From contig NC_047066.1 in assembly GCF_902459465.1 (NCBI RefSeq), positions 17,794,001 to 17,858,000 of the forward strand: a DNA stretch of 64,000 nucleotides, in the 5' to 3' direction. A program made the position numbers and the translations under genes. The DNA comes from Asterias rubens (Eukaryota). Shown here in pieces: positions 1-25,400 of the stretch (its first letter is position 1; each line of letters opens with the position of its first letter). The notes under the pieces were generated by a model that did no database searches, was not told the origin of the DNA, and worked only from the letters and a program-made list of their open reading frames with translations.

Positions 1-539
1 TCATAAAACTTTTAAGGTCTGGTTACTTACTGTACAGTTCATTGAAAAACTGGGAAGTTTAATTTGCTCACAAATACATACTTTCACATACAAGTTGCAA
101 TAGTGAAAGTTTTCTTTGTGTTAAAAGTAAGCACTGTATTAAATTGTATTCTAAAATTAATTAATTTTCCATTTGGCATACCCATGCTCTATTACACGAC
201 ATATATTGTGCATGCGTGACAAAATTGTATTCCTGCCTGAGTCATAGTTGAATCTAGTTGTTTTTTGGACATCAATGATTACATATCATTGTGTTTCAAC
301 CTGTCACCATTATAGCAGTACACTTGAGTACATTGTCATTCAACTCACACCTGTCTCTAATTGGCACTAAATTTAAAAGTGGCCCAGATACTTCAGATTG
401 AAGAACATAATGCAGTCACATTACAGACTGGAGATCTACATTAAATTTGACTGAACTTGTTTTAATGTTTAATAACGTAAACAAACAAATGGTTGATAGC
501 TGCGCTTTAATACAATGTACATGCCGTATATCTTTTTAA

Positions 540-812
540 AAAAGGGTCGGGCAGCTTTTTAACAAAAACAAAAAAAAACAAAAAAAGACCCTCTTCCTTC
601 CTTTTTTTTTTTTATATGATTTTTTTTTCAATGTCTTGTCCAACATATGTATTGTGTGTTTTAACATTAGAAAAAACAATGGATATTGGAAATTTTAAAA
701 AGAATGGCGGCCAGTAAAAAAAGTTTTTAAAAATAAAAAATTATAAGCCCCTCCTCCTTCCTTTTTTTTTAGAAACCCGAACGCTAAACATGTTTTGTTT
801 TTTTATTCGGCC
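540..812 (-). mobile_element. Fragment of a TIR DNA transposon related to the 62090-64000 element
   Basis: Ends in ttttattcggccta (reverse complement taGGCCGAATAAAA), resembling the taaGGCCGAACAAAA terminus at 62090. Confidence 0.45.
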
Positions 813-3762
813 TACAGTAGTACTGATCCTTTTTTTGTAAACATGTCATGATGATCTGTGTACACAGCGTAAACAGACAAATTATATTTTATTTCAATGA
901 AATTCAGAAAGAAAAGCTTAGTTGAACCATGGAGGTAGAACCCTTCAACAAACAGGTAAAAAAAAAAAAAAACTACGGAATTAAACCCCAAGGAATATGT
1001 GCCATTGCTTTCACAGCGCAAATAAAGACAATTTCCTCAAGACATTTCCAGCATATTGTAAAAAAAAATGTCAATGACTTGAATCTGCCTAGTACCGGGC
1101 TATTCTTTAAATAAAAAAACCCTGTGTAGTCAGTAGACAAGAACAGCCGAACTGATGGTGGCTTGACGTCAATTCATTTACAACGTACAAATTCAGTCTC
1201 ATCATTTGTGCTATTTTTCCCACAGCAAATTTGACCAAAGTTATTGAACGCTTCAATTTGGTTCGGACGTGCACGGAAAATTTGACAAAAATTCGTCAAA
1301 TGTGATTAGAGATTTGAGACTCAATTGTGGTTGGGGCTACGCCTCAATTTATGGAGATAAAACACAAAGTTTGGTGTACTGAACAAAGTACAACACAGAA
1401 ACAAGAGTACATCCAGGATACAAGCAAGTCTTTTTAGAAAAGCGGAGATGAACAAAAGAAATAAGGTGACAACTGACAAGTGCTCAAAAATTCTGGCACT
1501 ATAGTGTAAACAAAAGATAGGGATGAATAGCTACCGTTTAATAGGAACTGATATTGTGAGTATTCTTTGCCACAACTTCTCACCCTTGATTTATCCTTAA
1601 TCAGCATGTATGCGTCGAGGTCAGAATTTGTCTCAGTTTTGAAAAACATGATGTTATACAAGCAGAACTTAGGTGTACTCCTGCTTTCGTTTTCAAAAAG
1701 AGTTTGATCTTTTTAAACACGGTCATCACTTGCATGTAAATGTATTTCAAGAGATGCATTGAAGTCAAACGTAAGGTTTATCAATGATGTTTAAGAAAAT
1801 CTACATTTAATTGTAAGATAATTGTTTATAGAGTGCTGGCACCAGCACGTTGGTTCAAAGCTCGCTCTTGTCAATTTTTCTTTTTTCAATCCAAAATTAT
1901 ATAAAATGTGCCAGACCAGAGTCAGTTTCCCTTGTGGTTTATTATTTGTGATGAGCATGGAGGTACGTGTAGTCTACCTCCACAATATGAGACTTATTTA
2001 TGTGCATGTTAAACAAATGATGTACATGTGTAATGGTACAGTATGTAATTCGTGTACATGGTAAACATTTTACATGATGGACAGTACATGTACACATACT
2101 GTACTTACTCAATTTACATCATTGACACTTAATAGAGCAGCAGTAATGAGTTAACGAGGCATCAGTAAATAAACTTAATAACTCAAGTTGCAATCACTAC
2201 AGTACAAGTGCACTGATTCCAGTCTAAGGTAAACATTTTGACACCTGTTACATTGACATGTATAAATGGCACACCCAGGTTACAAAGTAGGGCAAGCTCC
2301 TGTGTGTGGACCCATCTTACAGTAATATGCAACTGCAGAATGTTGGCACAATGCACACACAGGGTGTTTCCATGTACAGATCACACGCAGAGAATAAATT
2401 ATTCTGAAACACTGCAGGGAGTACGTGCATTATAAATACCCTTGCATGACCACTATACTGTCAAAAAGACTGCATTGCATTGGAACGAATTCATATGCAA
2501 ACAAAATACATCTCGTTACGATCAACATGACATATTTACTACTGTACTCAATGGTAGCTCCTTCAATACAAAATTTCAAAAATTTTTCTTTGAATTAAAC
2601 CATTTTCTGCTGTGCAGTTTTTTTCATTGAACAAAAAATATTTATGTTTATTACAATGTGAATGTCCTTTACTACATGCACATAGTTTTCAATCAATGGT
2701 TTTTAAATGCAGTACAAACTATACTGTGAATTATCTAACATTTTAGTCAACAAAACAACATGACTGAATGGAAAATACATGTTTTGTTCATTGTCTTCTC
2801 CATTACGTCAAGCCGTACTCTATGGTCTAGCAAACAAAACCTTTACATTATTTCTTACATAAAAATCTTTTTTTTTGAGCGGTCTCTTCCTGCTTTACAA
2901 ATGACAGTACGACACATAATCTGTACAGAATATGTGTAGAGCTTCCGCTAATGTTCGCGGATCACAGCCATGCAGCGTTATTAATTCCTACGGGTCTATT
3001 CAGTCCACAGACGTACTTGGCACATGCCGAACCTGTGACTCATACCACGTTGTCACACAGCTCCGACGCAGACATGCAGGCGGGGATGTTTATAAACATA
3101 TGTGACAGAATATTCCTGTATGGCCACTTATTTTTGCATGGTTTTATTTTGTACAGTTGTTTACTTTGGGGACATTGTGACAGGTTATTTGCGTAAGGCA
3201 CTCTTTGTGGCACATATTTTTTGTCTGGTTGGGTGAGAGCGTGTTGTTTTGTATTTTATTGGCGTGATTCGGCAATTATGAAATTCAACCTTGAAAAGGA
3301 ATTTTTCTTGCAGGTTTCATGTTGTTTGGCAATGAAATTCAGATTTTCAAAAAAAATTATCAAAACACAATTGGTACATCCACCTCACATTGTACTTTTT
3401 TATTACTACATGTATCTTTGTGTACTTTCAAACTCAATGTTTACATGTGAGCCCGGAATTTCTTTACTGACATACAAAACTACTTTCCAAGAGAAATGAG
3501 CTCTGGAAAAGTAGACTGGCTATGGCCTTGAGTTATCCCAGCACCAAGAACACAGCACAACTACATTCATAGGAAAAATGTCCATTATCCACCATTCCCT
3601 TCAAGGTCACTTGTAAGATTCAATGCATTGATTTGATAATCTTAGACTTACAAGTTTCCCTTCAACAACAAATCTTCTTGAGCAATGAGTTGTAAATGTC
3701 AAAGTATTGACCTTATTTACAAACAAAGTAAGTAATGTTAGGCCTATATAATTTGTTTTTAA

Positions 3763-3937
3763 CCTTACACCGATACGTGTAAAGCACCATATAGGTCCAA
3801 TCTGTACTTTCCAGAGTCCTATGAGAAGGCACTATATATTTCTTGGGCGAGAATGGAACCCAAGACCTTTGCCATTCTAGAGCAGATGTCCAACCAACTA
3901 GACCACAGAGATAGCCCGGTAGCTAGAGGCAGTTCAA
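3763..3937 (-). mobile_element. tRNA-derived SINE-like family B (other copies at about 28645-28800 +, 35790-35925 -, 43790-43990 -, 53700-53850 -)
   Basis: Shared CCTCTAGCTACCGGGC leader, A-box-like GGTCTAGTTGG, B-box GGTTCGAATCC, and a shared tail ...gggaaagtactgagt...catcggtgta. Confidence 0.75.
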
Positions 3938-4683
3938 AGGTAAAATTACTAAAGAGAAATAGTGACAGCCTAATACGTAAGTTTGCTGAGGGCCCACTGT
4001 GGCAACCGTGCGTGTACAGTACTGATACCATTACATGTATAATGGATTTAGAGCACCTTGGAGCATTACTCAATTAGCATTCCAACTTCCAGACAATAAA
4101 GTACAAGCACAGAGAACCAGCACCTCTTCTCATTATAACAATACAGAAAGATGCATTCTCATACAGTGTATGATGATACAAAATTGATTTATTGAAAACT
4201 GTTAATTGCTCAATGTACAAAACACTTGTGTGGTACTATGGAAAAAGTCGTAAATGCTGGTCATTCAATGAAAATTTGAGGAACTGCTCTCTTTGTATAA
4301 AGTAAATTTACAGGTCAACGTCTTACATTTTAGCGGACATGCACAAAGATGGTCAGATACAGAATACACATGCAGTCACTAATCCTGTGTGTTTAATGGT
4401 TACCTTTGTAAAATATGTAGCTGATTCTAAAATTTTCAGTTACACCCGTGTTAACTTTCAAAGTTTATGTTTATTTTTGTTTATGACCTTGACAGTGATC
4501 AAAACATTGCGTCTTCATCACAGCCTCCAGACTTGAGCTTAAATCACCTTGCAAATACCCCACAAAACAATCCAAGGAGAGAGAAATCCTCAACAATATA
4601 GAGTTGAGTTCTTTTTCTTCTTGACAACATTGTAAAATATTCTCTTGAATAATTCAGGGTATCATATTTTAACTATCTCTAAT

Positions 4684-5070
4684 TTAAAGGAACACGTTGC
4701 CTTGGATCAGTCGAGTTGGTCTTTGAAAAGCGTTTGTAACCGTTTGTTATAAAATGCATATGGTTAGAAAGATGATTTAAAAGTAGAATACAATGATCCA
4801 CACAAACACACCTCGAAATTGCACGGTTTTCCCTTTACCTCGTCGATGAACACGGTCGGCCATTTATGGGAGTCAAATGTTTGACTCCCATAAATGGCCG
4901 ACCGTGTTAGTTTGCAAAGTAAAAAGAAAACCACGCAATTTCGAGGCAAATTTGTGTGGATCATTGTATTCTACTTTTAAAACATCCTTCCAATATGCAA
5001 TTTATAACAAACGGTTATAAACGCTTGTTATAGACCAACTCGTCCGATCCAAGGCAATGTGTTCCTTTAA
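4684..5070. mobile_element. Fold-back non-autonomous DNA transposon, TTAA-flanked (Kolobok-type)
   Basis: TTAA|AGGAACACGTTGCCTTGGATC...GATCCAAGGCAATGTGTTCCT|TTAA; nearly the whole element is palindromic; second copy at 55473-55861. Confidence 0.9.
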
Positions 5071-5344
5071 TAAAATAAAGCCTTGACATTGTTGTGAATA
5101 AACAAACTAAATTTACAACTGCACTCCCACCCTCCATGCTGGTGATGGTTTTTGAGTGTCCAGCAACGACAACAATGCTTTACATGGCTTTTAGCTGGAG
5201 CACCAGTGATAGTACTTGTTATAATAACTTCTTTTTTTTGGTGGGGGGGGGGGGGGGGTACGGGGGAAGACACACATTTTTCCTGGGCATGCTCAGACAA
5301 GTCTAGTCTTAAGTCAAGGCTTTTGTAACTGTTTTTAAATTTTT

Positions 5345-5531
5345 TAATTGCAAAATATCAAGAGAGGGCGCTGTTCCATTGAGCATGCTGCAAGTAATGA
5401 AAGGGGCATCGGTAGCCCAGGCGCATGGCATGTCATGCGCATGTTGAGCATGACAACATACACCTCGGTCGTTGAATGCCCCCTCTGCCTACCCATGACG
5501 CATTGCGGTTCTGAATCGCAATAAACCTTAT
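5345..5531. mobile_element. MITE family with ATAAGGTTTATCGC-type TIR (copies at about 30730-30899 and 60056-60212)
   Basis: Shared gcaaaatatcaagagagggcgctgtt and cgcattgcg...gaat.gc.ataaaccttat; the 60056 copy has both TIRs. Confidence 0.75.
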
Positions 5532-5754
5532 TGTGTCGCTCGGCAGGAGGCAAATTGTATGTTGCGCTGTGTTCATTCTGATCGCATTGTGGTCTGCATT
5601 TCGCGGCACTTTTTAGTGAAGTTTTTTAAAAGATTAAATCCAAACCGTAAAATGTTCTTTGTAACTGGAACAGGTTTAGCAGTCACACACATGAAAAGAG
5701 GGTGACAAAAGTCTCAATATAGGTACCAACTCCTACATGAGAACTTTGGTAGGC

Positions 5755-6050
5755 TTAGTAATAATAATAATAATATGGATTTATAACACGCACGCCTACA
5801 CAAAATAAAAACATTATACAATAGAAAATCAAGAATAAACATAATTTAACTTATACCCAATGAAAGTCTGAGTGAACAAGTGTGTTTTTAGTTCCCTGTT
5901 GAAGTTGTTGAGAGATGTTGTTTTGCGAAGTGAGACAGGGAGCTTATTCCATAGGGCAGGAGCAGCTTTGGCGAAAGCACGGTCTCTGTAACGAATTGCT
6001 CTAGACCTTGGCTCTACCAGCAAGTGAGATCCAGCAGACCGTAGTCAAAC
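5755..6050 (-). mobile_element. L2/CR1-clade LINE 3' fragment (RT C-terminus, 3' UTR and TTA tail)
   Basis: Minus-strand translation LLVEPRSRAIRYRDRAFAKAAPALWNKLPVSLRKTTSLNNFNRELKTHLF is the typical L2/CR1 ORF2 end, followed by a (TTA)n tail. Confidence 0.85.
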
Positions 6051-6207
6051 GGGGTAGACCGTAAACAAATGGGATAGTATCAACCTTTGACAGTTAATAC
6101 ATTACAAGTGCCTTCCTGACCTCCATATCCCCTTAACCTTTAACAAGACCAAAAAATGACAACAGTCAAACAAATATGTCGGTCAAGAATACATCCAGCA
6201 TACTTAC

Positions 6208-6239
6208 AGTTCTTCTCTCTGTCTCTGTGACAACACCAT
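6208..6239 (-). CDS. PAFAH1B1: LIS1 / platelet-activating factor acetylhydrolase IB subunit beta, first coding exon (gene continues past window position 1)
   Basis: Minus strand reads caccATG GTG TTG TCA CAG AGA CAG AGA GAA GAA CT|gtaagt = MVLSQRQREEL. This matches the LIS1 N-terminus (human MVLSQRQRDEL, recalled), with a strong Kozak context and a phase-2 donor after 32 coding nt, as recalled for human exon 2. The next exon (NxAIADYL) was not found in 1-6207. Confidence 0.85.
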
Positions 6240-6445
6240 GGTGATGGCATGGAATGGAAACTCAGCAAATCCAGTTAATACTCGATGGATCTAATATCCA
6301 CTCAGCGTGTGTGAAGGAAGGCCACACGTGCCACACTATGAGCTTTCGTTGTGAGAAGCTCAATAAGTACAGTTTATAGTTCACTACAAAAAAGTCACCA
6401 ACAACTGGTTTTCATCAGCTCATCATGTTTGCTGTCTTCATGAAT
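6240..6445 (-). other. PAFAH1B1: LIS1 5' UTR part of the ATG-containing exon (exon 6445-6208)
   Basis: Acceptor ttcatgtag|attcatg at 6447-6446; exon closed by the gtaagt donor at 6207; contains three upstream ATG-led ORFs. Confidence 0.6.
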
Positions 6446-6685
6446 CTACATGAAATATCAAGAGAAAAAACACAAGCAAAGTTATAATTACACTGTAGTT
6501 CAATCATAATTAAGCAGGGCTACACTTAGTGGGTGCATGTAAATCTGTACTACAATTTTGTCATTTTCCTCTTCATTTAGATTTATTTCCCCATAAAGAA
6601 ACATTTTGTGTTAAAAGAACAGTTGGATCCCTTAAAAAAATAAACCAACAACTGAAACGTTTCAAGAATAATTTGTGTGCATCAT

Positions 6686-6965
6686 GGAAGTGTTGTGGCC
6701 GAGCGGTTAAGAGCACCGAATTCAAACTCTGGTGTTTCTGATCAGCAGAGGGTGGGTTTGAATCCCCTGCCGTGACGCTTGTGTCCTTAAACAAGACACA
6801 TAACCATTGCTTCGTCCTTCGGATGGGACGTAAAGCCGTTGGTCCCATGTGTTGTGTAAAAGCATGTAAAAGAACCCAGTTATCGAAAAGAAAAGGGGTT
6901 CGCCCCAGTGTTCCTGGCTGGATTGGCAGCATATTGCCCCACAGCACCTTGTATACCATTACATG
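6686..6965 (+). mobile_element. tRNA-derived SINE family A (other copies at about 13910-14040 -, 28465-28625 +, 36700-37095 -, 42215-42610 +, 53330-53430 -)
   Basis: GTGGCCGAGCGG A-box and GGTTCGAATCC-like B-box; core gacacttgtgtccttRagcaagRcacttaacc; longer copies end in an L2-like gcgccttgag...gcgctata tail. Confidence 0.85.
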
Positions 6966-7060
6966 GTGCTTAGATCTTATATCTCAAATTTCGCCCCACT
7001 CCTTGCAGTAATAATACCTGGCGCTTTGTATCCTTTGGCAAAAGGCGCTTTATAAATAAG

Positions 7061-7061
<1 letters not shown>

Positions 7062-7122
<61 letters not shown>
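7062..7122 (+). repeat. (TTA)n microsatellite, tail of an L2-like 3' end
   Basis: About 20 TTA units directly after gcgctttg...aaggcgctttataaataa. Confidence 0.95.
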
Positions 7123-8432
7123 CAGTGTTTGTAAGTTTGGATGTGCAACATGTAGTGTAGGCACACGTCACTTGGAGATTCATTTATAAACAATATATCA
7201 GCCCCAAATTGGACGCAAATTGTTGTCAAAACTTTGTCTTCAACTTTTAGCATGCTGAGAACTGACAGTGACAGACAACCAAATAAGTGAATAAATTTGT
7301 TTTGAATATGAGTGTTTGTGTACAAAGGTTTTCTTATAAAAATTTAATATCTATTTTAAGACGATTATTTACCCTGAATGCTATCAGCACGTTAAGTGTC
7401 AGGATTGGGTGGAAATCGTCCTTGCATTTTGCAATCCTCCAATCTTATAATTATTACATAAGACCGTTAGGAGGATTGAGGGTTCTGAGTTACATAAAGC
7501 AAATATAACACCTCTCTCCAAACATTTTAAAAATTTTTAGGAAAAACCACAATTGCTAATGTTTACTAATTAGTCACACCAAATCATTCGTTAACTTAGT
7601 TGCGATAACGTAACCCTCCCCCGACGGCTTCAGTCGGGAGGAGGGTCACATGTACGCTATCGCAACTTACGTAAGTCGTCAAACTGTGCTGTCACTTCTT
7701 TAAAAAAGGATTATATAAATGTGTTGTTATAGTTTTTAATCGACCAGTTTAGTTCAAGTGGTTTAGTTAGTGGAGTGAACTTTGAATCTCTCTTTTCAAT
7801 TATTGATTTTTTTTTTAACTTAACATTTTTAAATTAACATGTTTAATTTCAAATAAAACTTTGAACTGAGTAATTTTGTGTTGTTGAAAACAATCCTAAT
7901 ATTATGATAAATCCAACATTTGAAGACAATGACAAAACTAGATGATAAGGTATTTACTATTATATGATTATGATCAAACAGCAATAATATGAGCCAACAC
8001 CAAAAATGTCACTCAAGTCAGTGACACAACAAAACTTGTTTAGACTCTTCTTATTTCATAAATAATGGTTGGATTGAATATCATTGAAATGAAAAAAGCA
8101 GACACACCCTGTCTGAAAGTTCAAAATAAACCGACATAAATATTGTTTACTCCCAAATCACTCATAACATTAAACAGTGTCAGTAATATTGAGTTCAATA
8201 ATACTCATTGTGTTTCAATGGACTCTTAATTATTCATGAAAACCACGATCTAAAATGACAATTTTGGAAATGGAGTCGCCCAATATGGCGAAGAACGTTG
8301 AAACTGACTGCCGCATATCTTATGTGCACAAACCGAATACAAATTTAACTGACGTGCCAAATGACCAAAAGGAATCGCTTAAATGTCTCGTGTTAATTCA
8401 ATAAAACCATGAAAATATCTCATCCTACCTAC

Positions 8433-8849
8433 CGACTAATGTTTACTTGTTCATGTTCACAGTCGTTCACAATCAAACTCAATCTCGGCACCGAGACATA
8501 AACAGACAAAATCCAAGTTTTCCTGTTCTTCCAACACGTTGAAATTTCAGCCAGGATGCACGCTCGCGCATGCGCTAACTTTGCTATGTGGAGTACATTT
8601 CCCAAGATGCAACGTAATTTCAAACCCGGAAGTTGTCATTTCGTTCGTCAGAATAAATAGACGGGTAACATTTTGTCCCCTTTTGTTTTGGCAATGCGGT
8701 TACGTCTAGGTGTAGTTTCCAAACCCACGTGTTGGTTGTTTACGAGTGTAAACCCGCGCGGCGGAGAGCTGTCCGATCGAGTCAAACTCAGAGCACAACG
8801 ATTATAAAACGTTTTTGATAAGACTTCAGATAAAAAGTAGAAACTACAG
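8433..8849. promoter_or_regulatory. Putative bidirectional promoter and non-coding first exons of LIS1 (-) and METTL16 (+)
   Basis: Minus-strand donor tcg|gtaggt at 8432 and plus-strand donor ctacag|gtaata at 8850. Between them is a CpG-richer stretch with GCGCATGCGC (NRF1-like, about 8566-8575), CCGGAAGT (ETS-like, about 8627) and CACGTG (about 8727). TSS positions are inferred. Confidence 0.55.
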
Positions 8850-9381
8850 GTAATATTTGTCAGCGAATGTAGATCATATTATATTTAACCAAAAATAAAT
8901 AATCGAACACGAATCCAGCACTCGACTCGAGCAGCAGAATAACTTTTGGAATGCTGAGTGACTGAACAGCTAGCTGAGTGAGTGTGAAATAATTAACCGT
9001 ATAAACTGTATTTATTCAAAATGTGTAATTGACATGCGGTCATACGAACTTTCTTGATCTTGATCTTGATATTTTACTGCACAAATCGCCTCAGATACGG
9101 CTGTTGACGTGCACATGCATCGCTAAATTTGGCATTTTTCTAGCATTATCTTTAACGCTGGGGTATCTTTACAAAGCACTACATGATACATCGAATGTCA
9201 GACAACTCGTCCGTCGGACAACTAGTCTGTTCGGACAACTCGACGGTTCAGACAACTCGACAGTTCGGACAATTCGGAAGCGGTTATGGTCATATAAGCT
9301 AGCATAACTACTAATTATTTTAACTAAATTCAAACCAGTTTTTATGGTGTTAATACTACTCTTCGGGTGGTATTTGCTGTT

Positions 9382-9640
9382 GGTGCCGAGTTTGGTTAAG
9401 TGGACCAACATAGGCCGGTGCCGAGTTTGTTTGGTGCCGAGTTTGGTTTGGTGGACCAAAATAGGCCGGTGCCGAGTTTGTTTGGTGCCGAGTTTGTTGG
9501 ACCAAAACAGGCCGGTGCCGAGTTTGTTTGGTGCCGAATTTCTTAGTGCCGAGTGGGTGCGAATTTGCGAGGTGCCGAGTTTGCAAAGTGCCGAGTTTGC
9601 TGGTGCCGAGTTTGCAAGGTGCCGAAGTGTCCGGTACCCG
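9382..9640. repeat. GGTGCCGAGTTT tandem array with higher-order dimer structure
   Basis: 12 copies of the core motif; the first six form three approximately 50-bp dimers. Confidence 0.9.
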
Positions 9641-10395
9641 CCAGTGGATACTTTTGAAGTTCTGTACTTTCTTTGGTTGGTGGCATCGGCTATCTATCTG
9701 ATCTCTATCATGTAGACGAACATGCGTAATGGCTTTTTTTTCTTCTTACATTTTGTTAGTCTGGCTCTTCATTCATACTTCGACTGCAGATTTCAAACAT
9801 AATAGATTGCCCTTATAACATTCTAAATTAATCTGATCATCATCATTGCTCGATTGAAATGAAACTTGCGTCTGCGTTGGGCACGATGGCGATTGCGCCA
9901 CATGTCCCACCATTCTACCATCAGCATCTTGAGGTCATCAGCAGGTGTAGCACCACTGAACTAAACAAAACTAGTGATAGTTTACCCCTGGATTTACCTG
10001 GATGTAGAGACTTAAAGGGAAGGTACTAGTGGGAAGGATCGTGATTGACTCTACGTGAAGGAAAATTTTCGTAATCTTTGAACAAGTTACGTCAGAAATG
10101 TCATTGTTTTAACTCTTCACGGAGGTGAGCATAGTTAAATACTTAATTTATGCTGTTTTATGTTGTCTTAATAGAAGTTTCATAAGGATTCAGACAAAAC
10201 ATTCCTATCAGTTGTCGCCCGACGTCCGCGGATATTCGGACATTAAAAGAATATCCAGTTACTTGGTTGTAATTACAGAACTATCCGGTTAATAAATAGG
10301 TCTTTGCGCCCTATGCGGATATCCGGTTAAGAAAAAAAAAACCTTCGCGGTTACGGATAGGAAAACCTATTCGCCATTAACCGGATATTCGAATA

Positions 10396-10778
10396 ATTCG
10401 CCCAGGCCTACTTGTTTGGTAATTACTCAAAACAAATGTTAACTTAAAAACTGACTTGGTAACAAGCATTGGAGAGCTGTTGATAGTATAAAACATTGTG
10501 AGAAATGGCTCCCTCTGAAGAAGCATAGATTTGGAGAAAGAGGTAATTTATCGCTAAAATAATAAAAGACTTCTAGCTAGAAGTCTTTTATTCCTATCTG
10601 AAAGCACACAAATTCGTCCAACTAGGGTGTTTTTTCTCTTAGTCTAATCATTTGCTCGCAACTTCGATGACCAATTGAGCTCAAATTTTTGCAGGCTTGT
10701 TTTTTTATGCTCAGGTTGGCATACACCAAGCGAGAAGACTGGTCTTTGACAATTACCAAATGTGTACCTTCCCTTTAA
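10396..10778. mobile_element. TTAA-flanked MITE, AGGGAAGGTACAC subfamily (second copy at 34038-34370)
   Basis: Ends gtgtaccttccct|TTAA; body shared with the AGGCACTGGACAC family. Confidence 0.8.
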
Positions 10779-10885
10779 AGCTTACGCTTATTTGCCCCTC
10801 TTGACTGGAAAACTGTAACAATAACATTGGTAATAATACTTGTTTGTTTCCCGTTTTTTACCAACAGATACGTGCAGTTGTCATC

Positions 10886-13800
10886 ATGGCCCTGAATCAG
10901 TTTATGCACCCAAGGAATCGCTATAGAAACAACAAGCCGGATTTTGCCAAGCTTGCTCAGGACTACCCAGAATTCAAACAGCACCTGTCAACGACCCTCG
11001 CAGGGAACGTCTCTCTTGACTTTCGCGATCCTGAGGCTCTTAGGGCGTTAACATGCACCTTGTTAAAAGAGGATTTTGGGATTGATCTTGAGATCCCCAT
11101 GGATCGGATTATCCCCACTGTACCACTGAGATTAAACTATATCCTATGGATTGAGGATTTGTTGAAGCAGAGCGGCCATGATAGATTAGAAGAAATCTGT
11201 GGCATTGATGTTGGTAAGAAAAAAGAACAGGAGAACTAGACATTTGAAGGCACTGAACACGTTTGACAAGTTTGTATATCCCAACATATATGCATAAAAT
11301 AACAAGCCTGCGAAAATTTGGACTCAATTAGTCATTGAAGTGAAACAATTCACACAAAATATTGCTAGCAACTCATCATTAGCCTTCATTTGATTTCATT
11401 GAGGGCGCTGTTTGTGCATGTAACATCGCATGCAAGGAGTGTCCAAAGTTACAGTTTTTCAGGACATACATGTTCAGTACTTCTTGTAAAGCTCCTTATC
11501 CATTATCTCCTTGTAGGTTGTGGTACGTCTTGTATCTACCCTTTGTTAGGAGCTAAGGTCAATGGTTGGCACTTCACTGCATCAGAGGTTGATTCCACAT
11601 CTACTGGTTATGCAATGCTCAATGTCAACAAAAACAAATTACAAGACAAAATACAAGGTATTTTTTTTTTTCGTTTTGCAGGCATAATATTCTGCCTACT
11701 TTAACAACATGGACTCTTGATTGTTTTGCCCTCAGAAAAATTTAGCAAAATTGTCATGGACCAGACTGATGAAAGCCTTTACTGTATAGGTCAGCCCTTA
11801 TACTCGATTGAATTTTTCTACTTTTGTCCAAGTCGCTAATATCATACCTGTATTCTACTCTTCTTTATCTGTGCAAATCTCCCAAATACTCAGGGTTTCG
11901 CATATTCTAACTAACACAAATTGACTCCATTTTTGTCTTTATTTGACTTGGCAGACTTGTTCTGTCTTAGTTCACCTTTTTTAATACTTGCAGGGTTTGC
12001 CTTTAACTTTTTCAATGAGTAGCCAGGAGGACCAGTTAGCTTGTCATTTGACTGGTCTGATGACAATGCAATTGTAAAAATATGATTTTAAACAATACAA
12101 ATTTGTGAGACAAACTTATTTGTCCACAATATTTTGAACACACTCACAAATATACTACACATTAATTGAAGCAATTATTGCCATCATTCAGACCTCTCAA
12201 TTTGTTTTTCATCTTCTTTGCATAGTTCTGGAGGTGAGCCCGGATGTCATGCTTTGTGGAATCTTCAAGATGGCCCCAAGACCTCTGTATCACTTCACAA
12301 TGTGCAACCCCCCATTCTTTGGTAACATTATGGAGGCCCAGGGCATTATGACATCTCGTAATGTTAGTCGGAGAGAGCCATCTTCAGTCAGTACAGCAGC
12401 TGAGTGTGAGATGGTTTGGGAGGAAGGTGGAGAAGTCGACTTCATCAGTCGGATGATCACTGATAGTTTACAGCTCAGAGAACAAGTTGTGTGAGTTGAT
12501 TATAACTCTTGAATTTTGATTGTGTGGGAGCTGGCCTTCTTTTTTGCCTTATTCATAAGTTTACCTTCTAAAACTTTAAAGGTCACATTGCTTTACTTTG
12601 GATGCCTAGGGCCAAATATTGGACACACAAAAAAGGCGGACTGTTTTAATAAGTTGAAGTATTACCAATCACATTCAAACCTATTCTTGCCTAAAAATCT
12701 TGCAGGAAAAAGTAAATGGCTTGACGTTTCAACCCTGGTAGAGTCCTTTGAAATACTCTGCTAGGGTCGAATCGTCAGGGCCCAATTTCATGGAGCTGCT
12801 AAGCACAACATTTTGCTTAGCATGACATTTTTTGCCTTGATCTCCACGTGATTTTAAGGATAAGCAAACAACAGCTGAATACATGTACCAAGCAATATGC
12901 AACAATGGGAAATTTGGTTGGTAATCCTGTTTTTATCAAGAATGACATTTCATGCTAAGCAAATTTTTGTGCTTAGCAGCTCTATGAAATTGGGCCCAGG
13001 TCATTAGCTATTTTTGCATTTATATTGGTAAGCAGTTTGCAACAGCTTATTATATTTTCGCGATTTCTAATCTTAAAAACTATTTTGCTATCTTCAGGTG
13101 GTACACATCAATGATCGGGAAGAAAGCGAGTTTAGGACCTCTCAAGCAAGAACTGGCTAAACACAAGGTGAGACCATAATGGTTCTTATTAAGCACACAT
13201 ATCCTAGTATAGATCAAGGCGCTATACAACATTAGTTCATCAGCCATACTTTTATACCATTCTTCTAACTTTCTCGACTCCCTGTGGAGCATACAACACT
13301 AAGCTGCTTAAATTAGCGCTGAGTGGTTAATCCAACACAATACTGTCTCAGCCGTCTCGGGTTCCTGTGTAGACACCTGGGTTAAAGGCACTGGACACTC
13401 GGTAATTACTCAAAATAATTGTTTAGCATAAAAATTTAGTTGCAAACGAGCAATGGAGAGCTGTTGATAGTATAAAACATTTTGAGAAACAGCTCCCTCT
13501 GTTGTTTTTGCGCAAGAAGTAATTTTCCACTAAAATATTTGTATTTGATTTTGAGACCTCAGAATTAGATTTTGAGGTCCCAAAATCAAGCATCTAAAAG
13601 CACACAACCTTGTTTGACAATGGTGTTTTTTCTTCCATTATTAATTTGAACTTCGACGACCAATGGGAGACTTTCTGGGACGATAGAGGGCAGCAGACTT
13701 ACCGGGTAAATCCATTGTTCTCAGAATTATGCGCATGTTCAGAACTACGTAAACAATGGAAATTTACCCGGTATGTCTGCTGCCACCTAGCGTTGGAAAG

Positions 13801-16800
13801 TCTCCTATTGAGTTCAAATTTTCACAGGTTGGTTATTTTGTGCATATGTTGAGATACACCAAGTGAGAAGACTGATCTTTGACATTAACCAAAGGTGTCC
13901 AGTGTATTTAAGAGAAGCAAATAATATGGTTAAGTGCCTTGTTCAAGGACACAAGTGTCATGACAGGCATTCGAACCCACAATCTAATGATGCAACCATC
14001 AGGACTTGAGTTTGATGCAGTAGACCACTTTGACCTGACACACCAAGTGTACACTGTATATTGGGAGGGAAGAAAATAAAGTGGTTGGTTGAATTGGTGC
14101 AGTGTTAACACTATATCGTTTTTCTTGGGTTTTTGAGAAATTAATGCAAAAATTCCTGTTTTCTCTCTCTATAGATTCGTAATGTGACAACGACAGAGTT
14201 TTGCCAGGGCAGGACAATGCGTTGGGGCATTGCTTGGACATTCCATGATGACATTGAACCCCTGGTAGGGAACAAAGTAAATCGACTCATACAAACTTAT
14301 GTTATATGAGAAATGAATTATCCAATGACAAAAGATATTAACATGACAGAGAGTAAAGAAAACATTAAGGACTTTGTCAACATGGATTCAAATGAACCAT
14401 AATATTGTATTGTATTGTATTGTACATGCGTGTTACTTTATGCACTTTATAAAAATAATGTATTTTTGAGTTCTGTAAAAGAAAAACCAGTTGGCAAATC
14501 ACTCGAGTGGGATTCCAACCCAGGACCATTCTCTCCAAGTGCTCGGGATGCCTAGTTCAGTGTTCAAAAGAATCTCTATATTATATCAAATATGAGCTAG
14601 TGACAAACGTGACGGACTAGTGAAATTAAAAGCTAACTGGTCCCTCTGGCTAGTTACTGGAAAAATATGAAGGCTGACCCTACATGTAAACACCTTTCTC
14701 ATTTGATGAACGTCATATGTAAGGTTTGCCATTGAGCTGTGTACACTTTGTGCCTTCAGGACTTCCAGCCGTCCATTTCACCAAACTCTTCCTAACTTAG
14801 GATTTATCTTAGGACTTAGGACGAGTCCCAACCCTGCACTGTAGCATGCAGACCTTAAAGACACTGGGGTCGATTTTACAAAGAGTTTGGACTAGTCTTA
14901 TCTTGAGTTAGGCTGAGTTACTCGTCCTAACTTAGGACTACGCATACATTTTGTATATCTCCTAGGACTAGTCCAAAGTTAGGACTAGTTCCAACTCTTT
15001 GTGATGCCGTCCATCTCAACATATGCATAAAATAACAAACCTGCGAAAATTTGAGCTTGAATGGTCGTCGCAGTTGCGAGATAACTATGAAAGAAAAAAA
15101 CCACCCTTGTCACATGAAGTGGTGTGCTTTCAGATGCTTGATTTCGAGACCTCAAATTCTAAACTTGAGTTCTCGAAATCAAATTTGTGGAAAATTACTT
15201 CTTTCTCAAAAACTACATGTACGTCACTTCAGAGGGAGCCGTTTCTCACAATGTTTTATACTATCAACCTCTCCCCATTACTCGTTACCAAATGAGGTTT
15301 TATGCTAATAATTATTTTGAGTAATTACCAATAGTGTTCACTGCCTTTAAGATTAATCCTAAGTTAAGACGAGTTACTCGTTCTTACTCAAGATAGGATT
15401 AGTCCTAGCGTTTTGTGAAATCAGCTGCAGGCTCTTTAGCTCTTGTGTAGTCATGACTGTGTAGTAATGGGGGCTTTTGATTTCTTTATCAAACCAGGTT
15501 CATATGTCACCGGTCAAGAAGTTCAAGCGAGATAAAGAGCGCCCTCCATTGGTCATTACAGTACCAGAGCAATACGTACAGAATGCTCTACAACAGCAAG
15601 AGGTCAGCTCGGGGTCAAAGGTTAAACCAGGAGGAACCAAGGATCAGCAGAGGGTCAAAGCTGTCGCAAAAGCAGTTGAGAAACTCCTGGGAAATCTAGA
15701 GGTATGCTTTTTGAAGAAAACATCTTAAGAAAACAATTTCGCTTTTTCTCTTCAAGAGTTTATAAATATTATCATCACATAAGAAATCTAAGGTCCCTCA
15801 GACTAAAATTTACAAGCCATGATCCAAAGCCTAGGATATAGACGATGTGACCTCTCACATTACTCGAAAAACCATAACATGATTCGCGCGCATACCGCTA
15901 AGCACAAAACCTTTGTGTTTTGGCAGCCAGCTAAAAAGTGTATGCAATCTTACCATGACTACGCGTCTTTTTGCCCGGCGAAAGATGACGTATACAGTGT
16001 TTTGTCATCAGAGGGCGGTTTGAATGTGGTCACATCGTCTATAGTATGTCAATTATGAATGTTGTGTGCAATGGTGAGAACACTTTCTTTAGTTGAAAGA
16101 TGGAATGTTACATTCAACGAGGCAAAGCCAAGTTGAATGGATTTATCTTTCATTGAATGAAACTATTCTAATTTGCTTGAATGGGAAACATTCATTATTT
16201 GTTTTATAAACATCTCTGAGTAGATCTTTGTAAATTGAAGGAAAAAATATCAACAAAATTTACAAGATGTTGTTGTGGCATTCTTTCTATTGGTTTTTAT
16301 AATTTGCACAGGCTAGGTGAACCAACAACTGAAAAGGGATGGTATGAAAATGCAGAATGAATAGTACCAAAATGCATGGTTAATGACATAGGCAACAATG
16401 AACCAGTTAACTATAATTTATTATATGACCCAGTTAACTAAACCAGGCAGTCTTATCCGTTCAAAGTTGCAATTTATAGTCATAGTAAAAACACTTGGCT
16501 GTCTGAACTGTAAATTTTAACTTCTTGTGGTTCTTATATCCCCAGATTGAACTTAAATCTAAACCTGGTATCAAGCTGTCTTCAAGATACACCCTAACTG
16601 CTGTTAAGAACACATGGTCCAACCAACGCAGGAAAAGACGCCAAAAACTCAAAAGGCGTCTCATGTTAGAGGGAGCTACACTGAGTGAACCAGCAGACAG
16701 AAATCCTGGCATGGGAGAAAAAATGACGCCAAGTATCCTGACAAGTGACAAGTCAAAAAGTGTCATGGCAAATTCTGTCCTGCTCCAGAGAACGAAACCC

Positions 16801-17349
16801 TTATCTGAAGAATGTGGATTGACACACACGATAGGAGAGGTGGAAACAAACAATGGTCCAGAACATTCCCCAAGGAAGGAATCTTGTGAGATGCCAGGCA
16901 TTGCAGCCTCTTGCTCAGAAACAATCCTCAGTGAAACCGATGTTAGAACTTTGGAAGTGAAACAAGTCGCTGGTGGTGGTTGTCAAGAAACGGCAAAGCT
17001 ACTCGATAAAAAAGACAGTTTATCACATTCTGTAACAAATGAGTCTAATGCTACAAATGTTACGCTAAAGAGTGTGGATACATTACAAGGAGTTAAACCC
17101 GTACCTGTAACAGGGTCTAGCAACTTGGATATCTCGTCCCCGGGAGGTGAAAATGCGAAGGGTACGGTTGCACTGCTCAGCTCATCCGAGGGCAGCAGTC
17201 AGGAAGCGGGGTTCGTTTTCAAGTGTTTGCTGTCAATCCGATTGGCTGATGGGAGCGTTGTCGTAGAGATGAGTTGGACAGAGGGAAAGACGCGGGAGTC
17301 CATGCACCAGGTTGGGCAGTACATGAAGAACCAGTTTAACAAGATCTAA
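10886..17349 (+). CDS. METTL16: RNA N6-adenosine methyltransferase METTL16 (U6/MAT2A m6A writer), 633 aa
   Basis: Coding exons 10886-11213, 11517-11657, 12226-12490, 13098-13167, 14175-14264, 15498-15701, 16546-17349; all GT-AG and in phase (1902 nt). Motifs: MALNQFMHPRNRY, PTVPLRLNYI, GIDVGCGTSCIYPLLG (SAM binding), MCNPPFF (catalytic), TEFCQGRTMRWGIAW, and C-terminal VCR/KA1-like NTWSNQRRKRR and FKCLLSI...EMSWTEG. Confidence 0.97.
12776..12999. mobile_element. MITE with GGCCCAATTTCAT TIR and CAG target duplication (PIF/Harbinger-like); related copies at about 45800-45960, 47399-47645, 50711-50908
   Basis: CAG|GGCCCAATTTCATGGAGCTGCTAAGCAC...GTGCTTAGCAGCTCTATGAAATTGGGCC|CAG. Confidence 0.85.
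13382..13911. mobile_element. High-copy TTAA-flanked MITE, AGGCACTGGACAC family (Kolobok-type), with a nested 140-bp palindromic MITE at 13666-13805
   Basis: TTAA|AGGCACTGGACAC...GTGTCCAGTGT; other copies at 14855-15350, 18187-18515, about 19800-20100, 34794-35177, 46796-47148, 50073-50460. Confidence 0.9.
15837..16043. mobile_element. MITE with TATAGACGATGTGACC TIR
   Basis: Perfect 16-bp inverted termini at 15837-15852 and 16028-16043. Confidence 0.85.
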
Positions 17350-20911: not shown

Positions 20912-22416
20912 TCACCCCATTGTACCCCTATTCACCCCCTTGTTAATCCCTGTTAACTTGCCTCGGTCACTGCCCCCATAAGTGCTCCGTCCATAGGCAG
21001 TTCTCTCCCCACGGTTGTACCCCTGGCCATCTCCCCTCTTGTACCCCTGGCCGTCTCCTCTCTTGTACCCTCCGCCGTCGTCCCTATTGTACCCTCCTCT
21101 GCCTCCGCCCCTACTGTACCCTCCTCTGCCACCGCCGCCTCCTCTCTTGTAGCCTCCGCCGTCGCTTCTCTTGTACCCATCTCGTTTATAGCCACGGTCG
21201 CCCTTATTGTAGTTGCCTCGCTCGCCCTTGTTGTAGCCACGCCCATCTTGTTTGAAGTTGCGTCCATCACCCTGCTTGAATCCACGCCCATCATTCTGGC
21301 GGTACTCTAGGAGTCTTTCTCCGTTCTCTACAAGGTTATTGACCTTGTCTGAGAGACGTAGAGCAAGATGTTGTAGCTTGGTTGGCTCACAGCGATGCAT
21401 GACGATCGTCTGAGCAGGTTCATCCCAGGAGGCCTGATAAGTCAAACATCATTAAACACAGTCAGATATCTTTCTTTGTTTCAAATGCAAGACCACTAGA
21501 TAAACACGACTTCAAAGATTTGTTTACATCAATCTATCTAGTGGTATAATACACTTATCATGTTACACTTGGTATCAAAGATACCAAGTTAATCAATTCA
21601 TGATCTATTTCAAGAATTCCGAAGCGATTATCCTACATGATCTAATTTTTGTACTGAAAAACTGTTAACAATCAAACATATACGACACATAATATACATG
21701 ATATCACGAGAGGGCATTATCACTCAATAAATACTGTTGATTTTGGGATGTACGAAGCCAACACTAATCAGCAAGATATATTTGGTTCTGTTTGTTCCCT
21801 TATTTAAAAACCGATTATTATTAATATATCTTACCATGAGTTCTTCATTGATGATCATTTTACTAATGATACTGTGCACTACAGGTTTCTCCAATTCAAA
21901 CATCTCAGCCAATGTGTTCATACTACACAGGGAGAAATCACAAATTCAATCATTCAATCTTTAATAATATTATCTTAATTTCAGTCAGCCATCTTTAGTT
22001 TTTTGATATAATCTAATTTAGTTCATTTTAATCAATAATTTTATAAATAATTAATTAATTTATTTATTTGTGTTTTCTTGCTCGTTTTCCATGTCTCTTC
22101 CTGTTGCTCTTGTCTAGGTTTGTCTGTTTTTGTTACTTTCATTTCTGTTTTATAATGTTGCCGTTTTTGTAAGGACCCCAATGGAAGAAAGCCTAACCTA
22201 AGATATTGGCTTTATTGAGTTACCCTTGGATATTCTGGTGTCGTATTTTTATCTTATGTTCTAGTTTGGCTTATCTTATTCATCGTTATTTCTCCCGTTG
22301 CTGTGTATGTATTTTGTACATGTTTTTATCCGAATAAATTCAAATCAAATCAAATCATATTCCCTGAATAAGAAGGTTTTACTTAGTTTTCTAAGTAGAG
22401 CGTATTTTAAATGCCG

Positions 22417-22475
<59 letters not shown>

Positions 22476-25400
22476 TATTATTATGCAGGCAACACTCGTC
22501 ATGGTCACCAGATTATCCTTTACTAAGATTTTGCTCTTACATTGGTGTGTGACAAGTAATGTGTTCTTAGTCCTGCAGGAAAAACAAATCCAGTGGCTAC
22601 TGAGGTGACATATGAACCCCCACCCCACATAGAGAGGATATCTTAACCACTAGAAACAGTAACTGGGAAAACTAGACGGGGTTGGCCATGGGAGAGTTGG
22701 CAAAGTTACATCATTGCTAACAGCACCTTCTACACGAAACACGAAACACCAAAGAGCGCAAGATGGAGAGTGAAAATCTGTCGTGTCCTTGGGAATATGG
22801 TTCCAAGATTGATTAATTGATTGATAGATTGATTGATAGCTTGATTGATTGATTGACTGACTATACTTGACTTACCTCAATGAGTCGTAAACACTCCCGT
22901 AGGTGAAGAGATAAGTCCTCAAACTCTCCTCCTGAATCTTCCTGTTATGTCAGAGAAATATGAACAACAAAATTTAACAACTCACTCCGCGGTAGTGCAG
23001 TTAATAATAATCCTTTAAGCTAAAGTAGTAGTTCCAGCCAATTTTCTATACCTTCCATCCAGGTCTAAGTTATAAAGCAGGACAGTTCTTTTCAGAACTG
23101 AGAAGTCTCCCAAACATCGGATAAATCTACTCTGTGGTAGTAGAATATAGCAAGACATTTCTCGAAAAAAAAAAAAACTCATGGCAAGTAGATACACACA
23201 TGGTGGAACCGCAACAAAATATATATTGATACCTCACCATGCAATGCCTCAAATCATATAGACAAGAGGTTGGAAACAAAAGACAAAATCAAAAGTAGGA
23301 AGAGAGAGAACAAGTACTAAATTACTAGGAAAATACTAGAGTTTTTCCCACCTTGTGATGAGATCACGAACATGGTCACTGTTTGGGAAGAGATTCCACA
23401 CCTTCCCATTCATCTTCTCATTCACCAAGAAATCTTTACACGCTTTCCAGTTGCCGTAGCGCATTGCGCGAGACGCGGCCACCACGTGCTCTCGCATACT
23501 CTCTGGGGGTCCTACTAGGGTCTGACGCTCACTCAGTCTCAGCTGATGATGGAAGCTTTTGCTGATCATGCGGCGACGGATGTCAAAGTTATGGGCTGTG
23601 CATAGGTATAGAAAAGATTTCTCAGATTAAATTGGGGAATGCCAATATTAACAAAAAGGTGAAAAAAATTTGGCAAGTACATGAACAAAAATAATTGGTT
23701 TGGAAATAACATTCCGAGGGTCGATATTAAGTGTACTTTCATGGTAGTCAGCAGGGCTAGAACTCAGAATTTTTAGTAGCCCTGATGAGATTTTGGTAGC
23801 CCAAAAAAAAACATTATCTCTTGAGTCACTGCAAAAATCGTTCACCAAAAGTATTTCATTTTACAATACCATCAGCACAGTTCATTATTGTTTGTGATGA
23901 TGATTTGTGCATTATTTTTTCACTAGCCTGTCGGGCTATCAAACTGGATAAATGAGTAGCCCTGTTGTAAATCTGGTAGTCCTAGGCTAGCGGGCTAGTG
24001 GCAATTTCGACCCCTGCATTAACACGTCTACAGACAATATTTCCACTGAGCCTTGGTTTGGTTACATCACAATGAATGGAAAATGGCTACATCTTGGTAC
24101 GTTAAATCTTACAGGCCATATATGGTATTTCCAACAGCATAGCAGACACTAGATAGACACATTCCAGTAGTTCTAGATTAATGTGCATATGAAATAATGA
24201 TATAAAATCTTACAGGCCATGTATGGGATCTCCAGCAGCATAGCAGACACTAGATAGACACATTCCAGTAGTTCTAGATTAATGTGCATATGGAACGGTA
24301 ACTGACGACTCTTCTCAATTTTCTCCTGGGTAGGATCTCGCTCCTGCTGCCTCTGCATCAATAGCCCCTGGAATATTCAATTCAACATGACATTTATTTC
24401 CATATTGCAAAATGTACATGTATACAAGCAATTTAAAAGAAGGTCTACTGAACAAAGATATATAAAGATCTACTAGAATAAAATTTATAGAAGACACAAT
24501 GAAACAGAGCGCCTGTCTGAAAAGGGTGCAACATGCTTGGACATTCCATTGTGAAGCGTGCACATTGCATGCACTTTCTGTGTTGTGCTTTGTTTGCCCT
24601 GTAACCAATAAGGCCACAGGGTACTGGACTCCATGCTTAAAATCTCCCTTTTTCCAGGGATGGTTATGTAATTACAGACCTTTTGTTTGACAAGTGAGGA
24701 TTACAAGAGATCGAGAGGCTGCCAGCATTGTAATTGTTATGGGAGGCAAGCCTAAGATAAGATTAAGATTCAGTCAAACAGCTTAGGCTTTGAGTCACCA
24801 AATGGTGTTGGATTTTCCTAGAGCGAGTAAGGGTCCTAACATATCATCCCAGGGAGCTGAAGCTCAGTAAAAATATAACTTTTAAACAATACTTTAAATC
24901 GAAAACTATCTGACAACCCTTTGCAATAATTTTTTTGATTTGACTCAACATTTAGTAGAATTATTAATCAGTTGAAAGGTTTGGGGTTCTATTCCAACCT
25001 GTGCAAGGAGCTCCTTGGCTCGACCACCGCTCTGGATATCCAGCAATGCATGATGGGCATCCTTGATGTTACCATGACGAAATGCGCACAGACCTAGTTG
25101 CACCATGGTCCGGTTGTATAAGATCTGGTGGAAATACAAAGTAGTGATGTGAATGGATAATATTCCGCATGTTGTGGCCGAGTGATCTAGTAAAATTAGT
25201 TTGTGTTCTGATAGCTACGCAATGAGAGTGTGAGTTTCGTTTCTCAGTTTTGTCACTTGTGTCCTTGAGCAAGTCATGAAAATTGCTTCTCGTCACCAAG
25301 GAGGTAAATGTGATGTGGAGGCAAATATAAAAATGTATTTGACTTAAGCTTGGTGTGCAACAGCTCTCGCAACACAGATATACATTATCATTATTAAATT

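Follow-up and report, generated by a model that had tools for sequence, protein, structure and literature searches.

A head-to-head LIS1-METTL16 gene pair and a conserved 25-nucleotide element in LIS1 exon 1 of the sea star Asterias rubens

A bidirectional promoter serves two divergent genes whose start sites lie less than 1 kb apart. Among conserved ancestral microsyntenic pairs (CAMPs), the 5'-5' orientation is enriched, and the spacers of such pairs are short (Irimia et al. 2012, PMC3514665). In human bidirectional promoters, the motifs of GABPA, NRF1, NFY and YY1 are enriched, and a single Staf/ZNF143-binding site (SBS), an 18-bp sequence with CCCR at positions 3-6 and C at position 12, is sufficient for bidirectional activity (PMC3082894). 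Few non-coding elements are known that are conserved across the Bilateria (PMC4613772, PMC3410860). In this study, we describe a 64,000-nt stretch of the genome of the sea star Asterias rubens (NC_047066.1, positions 17,794,001 to 17,858,000, hereafter the window), in which the orthologs of the lissencephaly gene LIS1/PAFAH1B1, on the minus strand, and of METTL16, which codes for an RNA methyltransferase, on the plus strand, stand head to head. What is new here, according to sequence alignments, is a 25-nt element inside LIS1 exon 1, conserved in the seven species in which we found the pair.

The LIS1-METTL16 pair belongs to the known class of conserved 5'-5' gene pairs with bidirectional promoters. 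It departs from CAMPs in that its spacer has grown to tens of kb in human, and in that its orientation has changed in a teleost. Otherwise it is like the 5'-5' CAMPs, of which HSPD1-HSPE1 is an example (PMC3514665), in that two unrelated genes have stayed side by side in divergent orientation in several phyla, with a short spacer and a bidirectional-type promoter. With the human Staf/ZNF143-dependent bidirectional promoters (PMC3082894) the locus shares a CpG-rich spacer, SBS-type sites, and NRF1 plus GABP/ETS motifs; however, a CACGTT-type core lies just upstream of the SBS here, instead of the RRACTAYRN motif found in human, and binding and bidirectional activity are, in our case, predicted from sequence. 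As in the Bicores (PMC3410860) and the 5' elements of RPLP1 and RPLP2 (PMC4613772), a short non-coding sequence at a fixed place near a gene can be aligned across bilaterian phyla. The Bicores act as developmental enhancers, and the RPLP sequences are 5' untranslated region (5'UTR) elements of ribosomal stalk genes, whereas the LIS1 element is only ~25 nt long and belongs to a divergent pair, in which it sits in the first exon and promoter of LIS1. Our literature search found no paper on the LIS1-METTL16 pair, the pair list of the microsynteny survey (PMC3514665) being outside its reach, and the supplements of a study of human divergent gene pairs list neither LIS1 nor METTL16.

LIS1 and METTL16 in Asterias and in other animals

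The plus-strand gene is the METTL16 ortholog, as a preliminary description of this DNA had proposed. The family PF05971 (Methyltransf_10) matches three of its exons (E-values 2e-35, 5e-13 and 5e-14), the best of these matches covering family positions 1-110 in the ATG exon, and the NPPF catalytic motif is present as CNPPFF in the open reading frame 12234-12494, which corresponds to the exon near 12300. When the METTL16 protein of A. rubens (P0180, 633 amino acids) was aligned to the window by tblastn, all query residues were covered by seven coding segments, six of them at 99.6-100% identity and the seventh (15468-15704) as a partial alignment at 84%. At the C-terminus, only the last 80-90 residues can be aligned with other echinoderm proteins, at ~50-65%, and a Pfam search with the last exon, looked at for an RNA-binding domain of the C-terminal vertebrate-conserved-region type, gave no match.

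The minus-strand gene is the LIS1/PAFAH1B1 ortholog. LIS1 is a protein of ~410 amino acids, with an N-terminal LisH/PAC1-type dimerisation motif followed by a WD40 propeller, and the window carries only its first 11 residues, MVLSQRQREEL. They are encoded by 32 bases that start at an ATG at 6239 in a Kozak-like context (CACC-ATG-G), and a phase-2 donor (GTAAGT, 6207..6202) closes this first coding exon. A PDB search with the 21-residue translation around the ATG found no match, the query being too short. The A. rubens locus L006 (GCA_902459465.3, LR699096.1) is identical base-for-base to positions 886-27349 of the window, and there the NCBI gene call starts at window position 6239 and gives a 418-residue product with PF24951 (LisH_PAC1) and WD40-type families. 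Both this call and the orientation of the genes in the window place LIS1 and METTL16 head to head, as had been described. Motif searches along the minus strand of 1-6207 found no second LIS1 coding exon, so the next intron must be longer than 6.2 kb and the remainder of the gene must lie off the window; the expectation that further LIS1 exons would follow there is answered by the annotated product, and not by sequence read here.

RNA contigs define most of the 5' end of LIS1. A contig from run X1 (387 nt, depth ~700) matches 6208-6333 exactly and has its other 261 nt elsewhere, and this break fixes the splice boundary at 6208. What had been taken for a 32-nt exon is therefore right in its coding bases and in its LIS1-type phase-2 donor, on which sequence, contig and NCBI call agree, and wrong in its length, since the exon spans 238 nt (6208-6445). 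A contig from run X2 (233 nt) matches 8433-8583 and then jumps, which confirms the LIS1 first-exon donor suggested at 8432 (8433/8432). Variants at 6394 and 6401, equal in depth and situated 31 and 38 letters from a contig end, place the remaining 82 nt of this contig at ~6363-6445. The non-coding exon 1 is thus spliced to the ATG exon 6208-6445, whose upper end is likely to be at the acceptor 6445/6446, given the X2 remainder and an AG with a pyrimidine tract at 6446-6475. In the raw reads of run X15 the depth is ~19 over 8400-8599 and below 1 over 8600-8799, a drop that puts the 5' end of LIS1 near 8585-8600.

In the case of METTL16, the ATG comes after a pyrimidine tract and an AG (10867), both of which are kept in a related star (contig L010), and the acceptor has counterparts in Patiria and Strongylocentrotus purpuratus, which indicates that echinoderm METTL16 has an upstream non-coding exon. 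The Logan contig L010 was also considered as a spliced METTL16 5'UTR and rejected, as it is unspliced genomic DNA of the related star.

METTL16 representatives from other animals were collected in a profile-free search with the 110-residue exon, followed by gene-context look-ups for each species. Besides Asterias, the head-to-head pair is present in six animals (Table 1), and it therefore spans five phyla, namely Echinodermata (three species), Hemichordata, Cephalochordata, Brachiopoda and Nemertea. The gene orientation is the same in all seven species with the pair. In each of the other six (Patiria, S. purpuratus, Ptychodera, Branchiostoma belcheri, Lingula and Tubulanus) the LIS1 first coding exon was located at the called start, and it is the same or near-identical (MVLSQRQ..EL), with the same donor phase. 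The occurrence of the pair in deuterostomes as well as in a brachiopod and a nemertean makes the linkage older than the protostome-deuterostome split and ancestral to Bilateria. Its suggested origin before the echinoderm-chordate split is thus borne out by the hemichordate and amphioxus, and the brachiopod and the nemertean extend it further back. In human, too, the two genes are adjacent and divergent, as the preliminary description had it. Their neighbourhood on 17p13.3 is documented: MNT, METTL16 and PAFAH1B1 are listed in this order (PMC5876250), and METTL16 and PAFAH1B1 have the start coordinates 2,405,562 and 2,593,183 (PMC11876076).

Table 1. Features of the LIS1-METTL16 locus in the window, and the pair in six other animals.
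Feature or species	Position in the window, or distance	Strand or orientation	Description
LIS1 exon 2	6208..6445	-	238 nt: 5'UTR 6240-6445 and 32 coding bases 6239-6208
LIS1 intron 1	6446..8432	-	SINE-like (short interspersed nuclear element) repeat (~6680-6960), (TTA)20 run, hairpin element
LIS1 non-coding exon 1	8433..8583 (minimum extent)	-	donor GTAGGT 8432..8427; X2 contig
Conserved 25-nt element	8529..8553	+	CACGTT-type core, then Staf/ZNF143-like CCCA site; inside LIS1 exon 1
CpG-undepleted island	8100..9800		observed/expected 0.9-1.7, mostly 1.2-1.7 up to 9300; whole window 0.6
Asterias-Patiria conserved promoter block	8437..8666		blastn 73% over 233 nt, core ~90%
NRF1 palindrome (predicted)	8566-8575		in conserved block; sequence match
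Staf/ZNF143-like (SBS-like) site (predicted)	8597-8614		CCCA at positions 3-6, C at position 12
ETS/GABP site (predicted)	8626-8633		in conserved block; sequence match
E-box CACGTG (predicted)	8726..8731		kept in Patiria
METTL16 non-coding exon 1 (probable)	8800..8977	+	5' end ~8750-8803; X15 depth
METTL16 exon 2	10868..11213	+	ATG 10886; acceptor 10867/10868
METTL16 coding region	10886..17349	+	segments start near 10886, 11517, 12225, 13099, 14175, 15468/15497, 16543
Patiria miniata (sea star)	ATG to ATG 5469 bp	LIS1(-) / METTL16(+)	
Strongylocentrotus purpuratus (sea urchin)	ATG to ATG 5259 bp	LIS1(-) / METTL16(+)	
Ptychodera flava (hemichordate)	ATG to ATG 1368 bp	LIS1(-) / METTL16(+)	
Branchiostoma belcheri (cephalochordate)	ATG to ATG 1137 bp	LIS1(-) / METTL16(+)	
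Lingula anatina (brachiopod)	ATG to ATG 2312 bp	LIS1(-) / METTL16(+)	CLUH downstream
Tubulanus polymorphus (nemertean)	ATG to ATG 1700 bp	LIS1(-) / METTL16(+)	CLUH downstream

A conserved element in LIS1 exon 1

The element was traced from weak blastn matches of the Asterias spacer to Ptychodera and Lingula, and its core reads ACACGTTGAAA. All seven species that have the pair carry it between LIS1 and METTL16 and in the same strand orientation, with 3-7 of its 25 positions mismatched; equally good matches arise in only 0-3 of 300 shuffles of each interval, and other pieces of the same size from the same loci show 7-12 mismatches. The 11-mer core occurs five times in 323 kb (both strands), each time in this interval, where 0.15 occurrences are expected. 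A 13-position pattern, built from the observed sequences, is found once in each of six loci, always at the element, and does not occur in the loci examined from crinoid, bee, damselfly and fugu. A 10-mer match in the bee (L011 7392, minus strand), which is without flanking similarity, was taken as chance.

In the alignment of the element (A2), the invariant positions spell C-ACACGTT-A-A. The site that follows the core fits the full Staf consensus in Ptychodera, Lingula and S. purpuratus and has one mismatch in both sea stars, and NRF1-type TGCGCA sites lie 30-50 nt beyond this Staf-type site. In every species, 80-116 nt separate the element from a minus-strand donor or donor-like site on its left; this site is mapped by RNA as the LIS1 exon-1 donor in Asterias only and predicted from the sequence in the other six. 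This near-constant distance gives the element a fixed place in LIS1 exon 1. Within the sea-star promoter, the E-box region 8721-8738 (CCACGTGTTGG) resembles the reverse complement of the core of the element (8529-8544), so that the core motif may be carried once per direction, ~190 bp apart.

The location of the element inside a transcribed exon in Asterias, and the near-constant distance of the donor-like site in all the species, would also suit an element that works as RNA, controlling the translation or stability of a dosage-sensitive gene from the LIS1 5'UTR, rather than as a promoter site. In the same direction, overlap with transcribed regions has been reported for all of the most ancient 5' conserved non-coding elements (PMC4613772). 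However, part of the sequence fits a Staf/ZNF143 DNA site (PMC3082894), Rfam has no match for it, and its near-palindrome loses would-be pairs to substitutions in amphioxus and S. purpuratus. A hairpin reading was indeed rejected, as the near-palindrome shows no compensatory changes in alignment A2. We consider an RNA function unlikely, and we read the element as a putative composite DNA site in a shared promoter.

A more far-reaching proposal can be put forward tentatively, with the odds somewhat against it as a whole. The element would be a fixed composite of a CACGTT core and a Staf/ZNF143 site that sets the dosage of LIS1 and that, by firing in both directions, has kept METTL16 linked with LIS1 from the bilaterian ancestor onwards. 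When the pair breaks, it would remain with LIS1, so that it would be present also at the human PAFAH1B1 promoter, and it would be one of a very small number of non-coding sequences that can be aligned between protostomes and deuterostomes.

A probable shared 5' region and competing accounts

It is likely that LIS1/PAFAH1B1 and METTL16, two genes of housekeeping type, share their 5' region at this locus. Across the whole ATG-to-ATG interval, the segment 8437-8666 is the only unique block kept with Patiria miniata, and the NRF1, SBS-like and ETS motifs that it contains, at 8566, 8597 and 8626, are sequence matches that are also kept there. The CpG-rich sequence that separates and surrounds the two starts is probably a bidirectional promoter. 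NRF1, Staf/ZNF143, ETS/GABP and E-box factors would drive both genes from it, the Staf-type sites, able to fire both ways, would serve both of them, and the pair might persist because a break in so short a spacer would harm the promoter of one gene.

The first exon of METTL16 probably starts at ~8750-8803, ~0.2 kb from the LIS1 5' end. There are two candidate donors for it, 8849/8850 (CAG/GTAATA, a fair consensus) and 8977/8978 (TGA/GTGAGT). The X15 depth of ~3 over 8800-8999 is like that of METTL16 exon 2 and fits an exon of ~180 nt better than one of 50 nt; in this library, the LIS1 exons show no strand bias, and the low-depth reads over 8800-8999 therefore carry no strand information. The donor favoured in the preliminary description, at 8850, is not confirmed, as it is crossed unspliced by a contig and is without conservation in Patiria. 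The distance of 417 bp (~0.4 kb) between the first-exon donors of the two genes is therefore unconfirmed as well, although 5' ends a few hundred bp apart remain likely, with one half of the pair mapped.

The distance between the element and the METTL16 ATG provides a second view of the spacing. It amounts to 453 nt in Ptychodera, 394 nt in amphioxus and 122 nt in Tubulanus, and none of these three has a plus-strand donor candidate in between, so that the starts would be less than 0.5 kb apart there, provided that LIS1 has its start close to the element, as in Asterias.

Several observations weigh against a shared promoter. The METTL16 start site is not mapped by RNA: the sole contig near 8850 (X2, 8803-8929) crosses the donor unspliced, at low depth and 6% divergence; the RNA mapping, dominated by repeats, showed no spliced read joining an upstream exon to 10868; and an exact-word search for 8851-8977, uninformative as to the donor, matched no RNA runs, only runs of unknown kind. 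All the transcription-factor motifs are sequence matches only. In run X15, the LIS1 exons are covered at ~4-8x the depth of METTL16 exon 2, which means that their expression levels are dissimilar. The arrangement itself also fails in some animals. In the crinoid Anneissia, no LIS1 exon lies within 10 kb and a KSR-like kinase is upstream of METTL16; in the bee Anthophora and the damselfly Ischnura, no LIS1 is found within 10 kb of METTL16; in Takifugu bimaculatus (L009 1-6198), LIS1 is in tandem, on the same strand, 3.8 kb upstream of mettl16; and the human pair is tens of kb apart. The LIS1-METTL16 linkage is thus old but dispensable, and tight coupling is not obligatory.

The unmapped METTL16 first exon and the several-fold expression difference in X15 would be accommodated by two adjacent genes with separate promoters, the block 8437-8666 serving LIS1 only and METTL16 starting elsewhere in the 2.3 kb before 10868. 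Moreover, in the loci where METTL16 has no LIS1 head to head with it, the element is missing upstream of METTL16, as if it were owned by LIS1. Nevertheless, the interval 8667-10868 holds no second conserved block or separate unique CpG island, but tandem arrays and high-copy repeats instead, and the gap between the element and the METTL16 ATG is only 122 nt in Tubulanus and less than 460 nt in amphioxus and Ptychodera. Separate promoters are, in our opinion, quite improbable.

Losses of the arrangement bear on another account, in which the pair was retained passively, the spacer being a very small target in slowly rearranging genomes, with no selection for co-regulation. The arrangement is lost or changed in fast-evolving or rearranged lineages (insects, the teleost) and also in the crinoid, and the neighbours on the far side differ between lineages, as would be expected from it. 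By contrast, an identical orientation in seven of seven species with the pair, and a promoter element kept for more than 500 million years, which implies selection on the spacer itself, speak for more than passive retention, which we regard as doubtful, if less so than the other alternatives. A shared promoter of LIS1 and METTL16 is the account that we prefer for the locus, but as the reason for the retention of the pair, as it had been put forward, it stays conjectural, the pair being absent within 10 kb in crinoid, bee and damselfly and re-oriented in Takifugu. Likewise, a functional coupling of the two genes is hypothetical.

Genomic surroundings and significance

The gene on the far side of METTL16 varies, being eIF3c in echinoderms and CLUH in spiralians and the bee. 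In the window, eIF3c lies tail to tail with METTL16 at ~21300-30000 on the minus strand, and likewise in the crinoid Anneissia (L002), so that this adjacency may be an echinoderm feature. CLUH is tail to tail downstream of METTL16 in Lingula (L005 15537-23108), Tubulanus (L008 15003-22596) and the bee Anthophora (L011 13977-21966), and it is the next gene after PAFAH1B1 in human. LIS1, METTL16 and CLUH may therefore form an old three-gene block whose order has changed. In Takifugu bimaculatus, an MNT-like helix-loop-helix gene is downstream of mettl16 (L009 24483-32881), and the adjacency is kept with the orientation of LIS1 inverted. Neither CLUH nor MNT is in the Asterias window.

Repeats are present in the first introns of both genes. 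In LIS1 intron 1 there are a SINE-like high-copy repeat (6680-6960), a perfect (TTA)20 run (7062-7122) and a long hairpin element (7587-7672), the last with only a sub-threshold Rfam microRNA match (E 0.57); Rfam and tRNA scans of 6000-11000 gave nothing above threshold. Outside the promoter region, METTL16 intron 1 consists of tandem arrays and high-copy repeats, with CpG-rich arrays at 9201-9276 (17-mer) and 9380-9625 (16/51-mer units). Run X16 lacks reads of LIS1 and METTL16 but has reads on these arrays, and both arrays therefore represent copies of a dispersed repeat. On either side of the METTL16 first coding exon (10868-11213) there is a 50-nt arm of an inverted repeat (10661-10710 and 11292-11341, 88% complementary); the arms come from a very high-copy repeat, for which the RNA depth is in the thousands. 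Inverted repeats placed in this way can promote back-splicing.

LIS1 is a textbook example of a dosage-sensitive gene, and its neighbour in the Miller-Dieker region is METTL16. METTL16 itself has recently been implicated in Miller-Dieker syndrome (PMC12347932). All together, our results show that LIS1 and METTL16 have been head-to-head neighbours since before the protostome-deuterostome split, and suggest that in compact invertebrate genomes both genes start from one small promoter region. With the element, the small set of non-coding sequences conserved across the Bilateria gains a well-documented case and, kept across five phyla, the element offers a testable handle on the transcriptional or 5'UTR control of LIS1 and on the co-regulation of the two genes.

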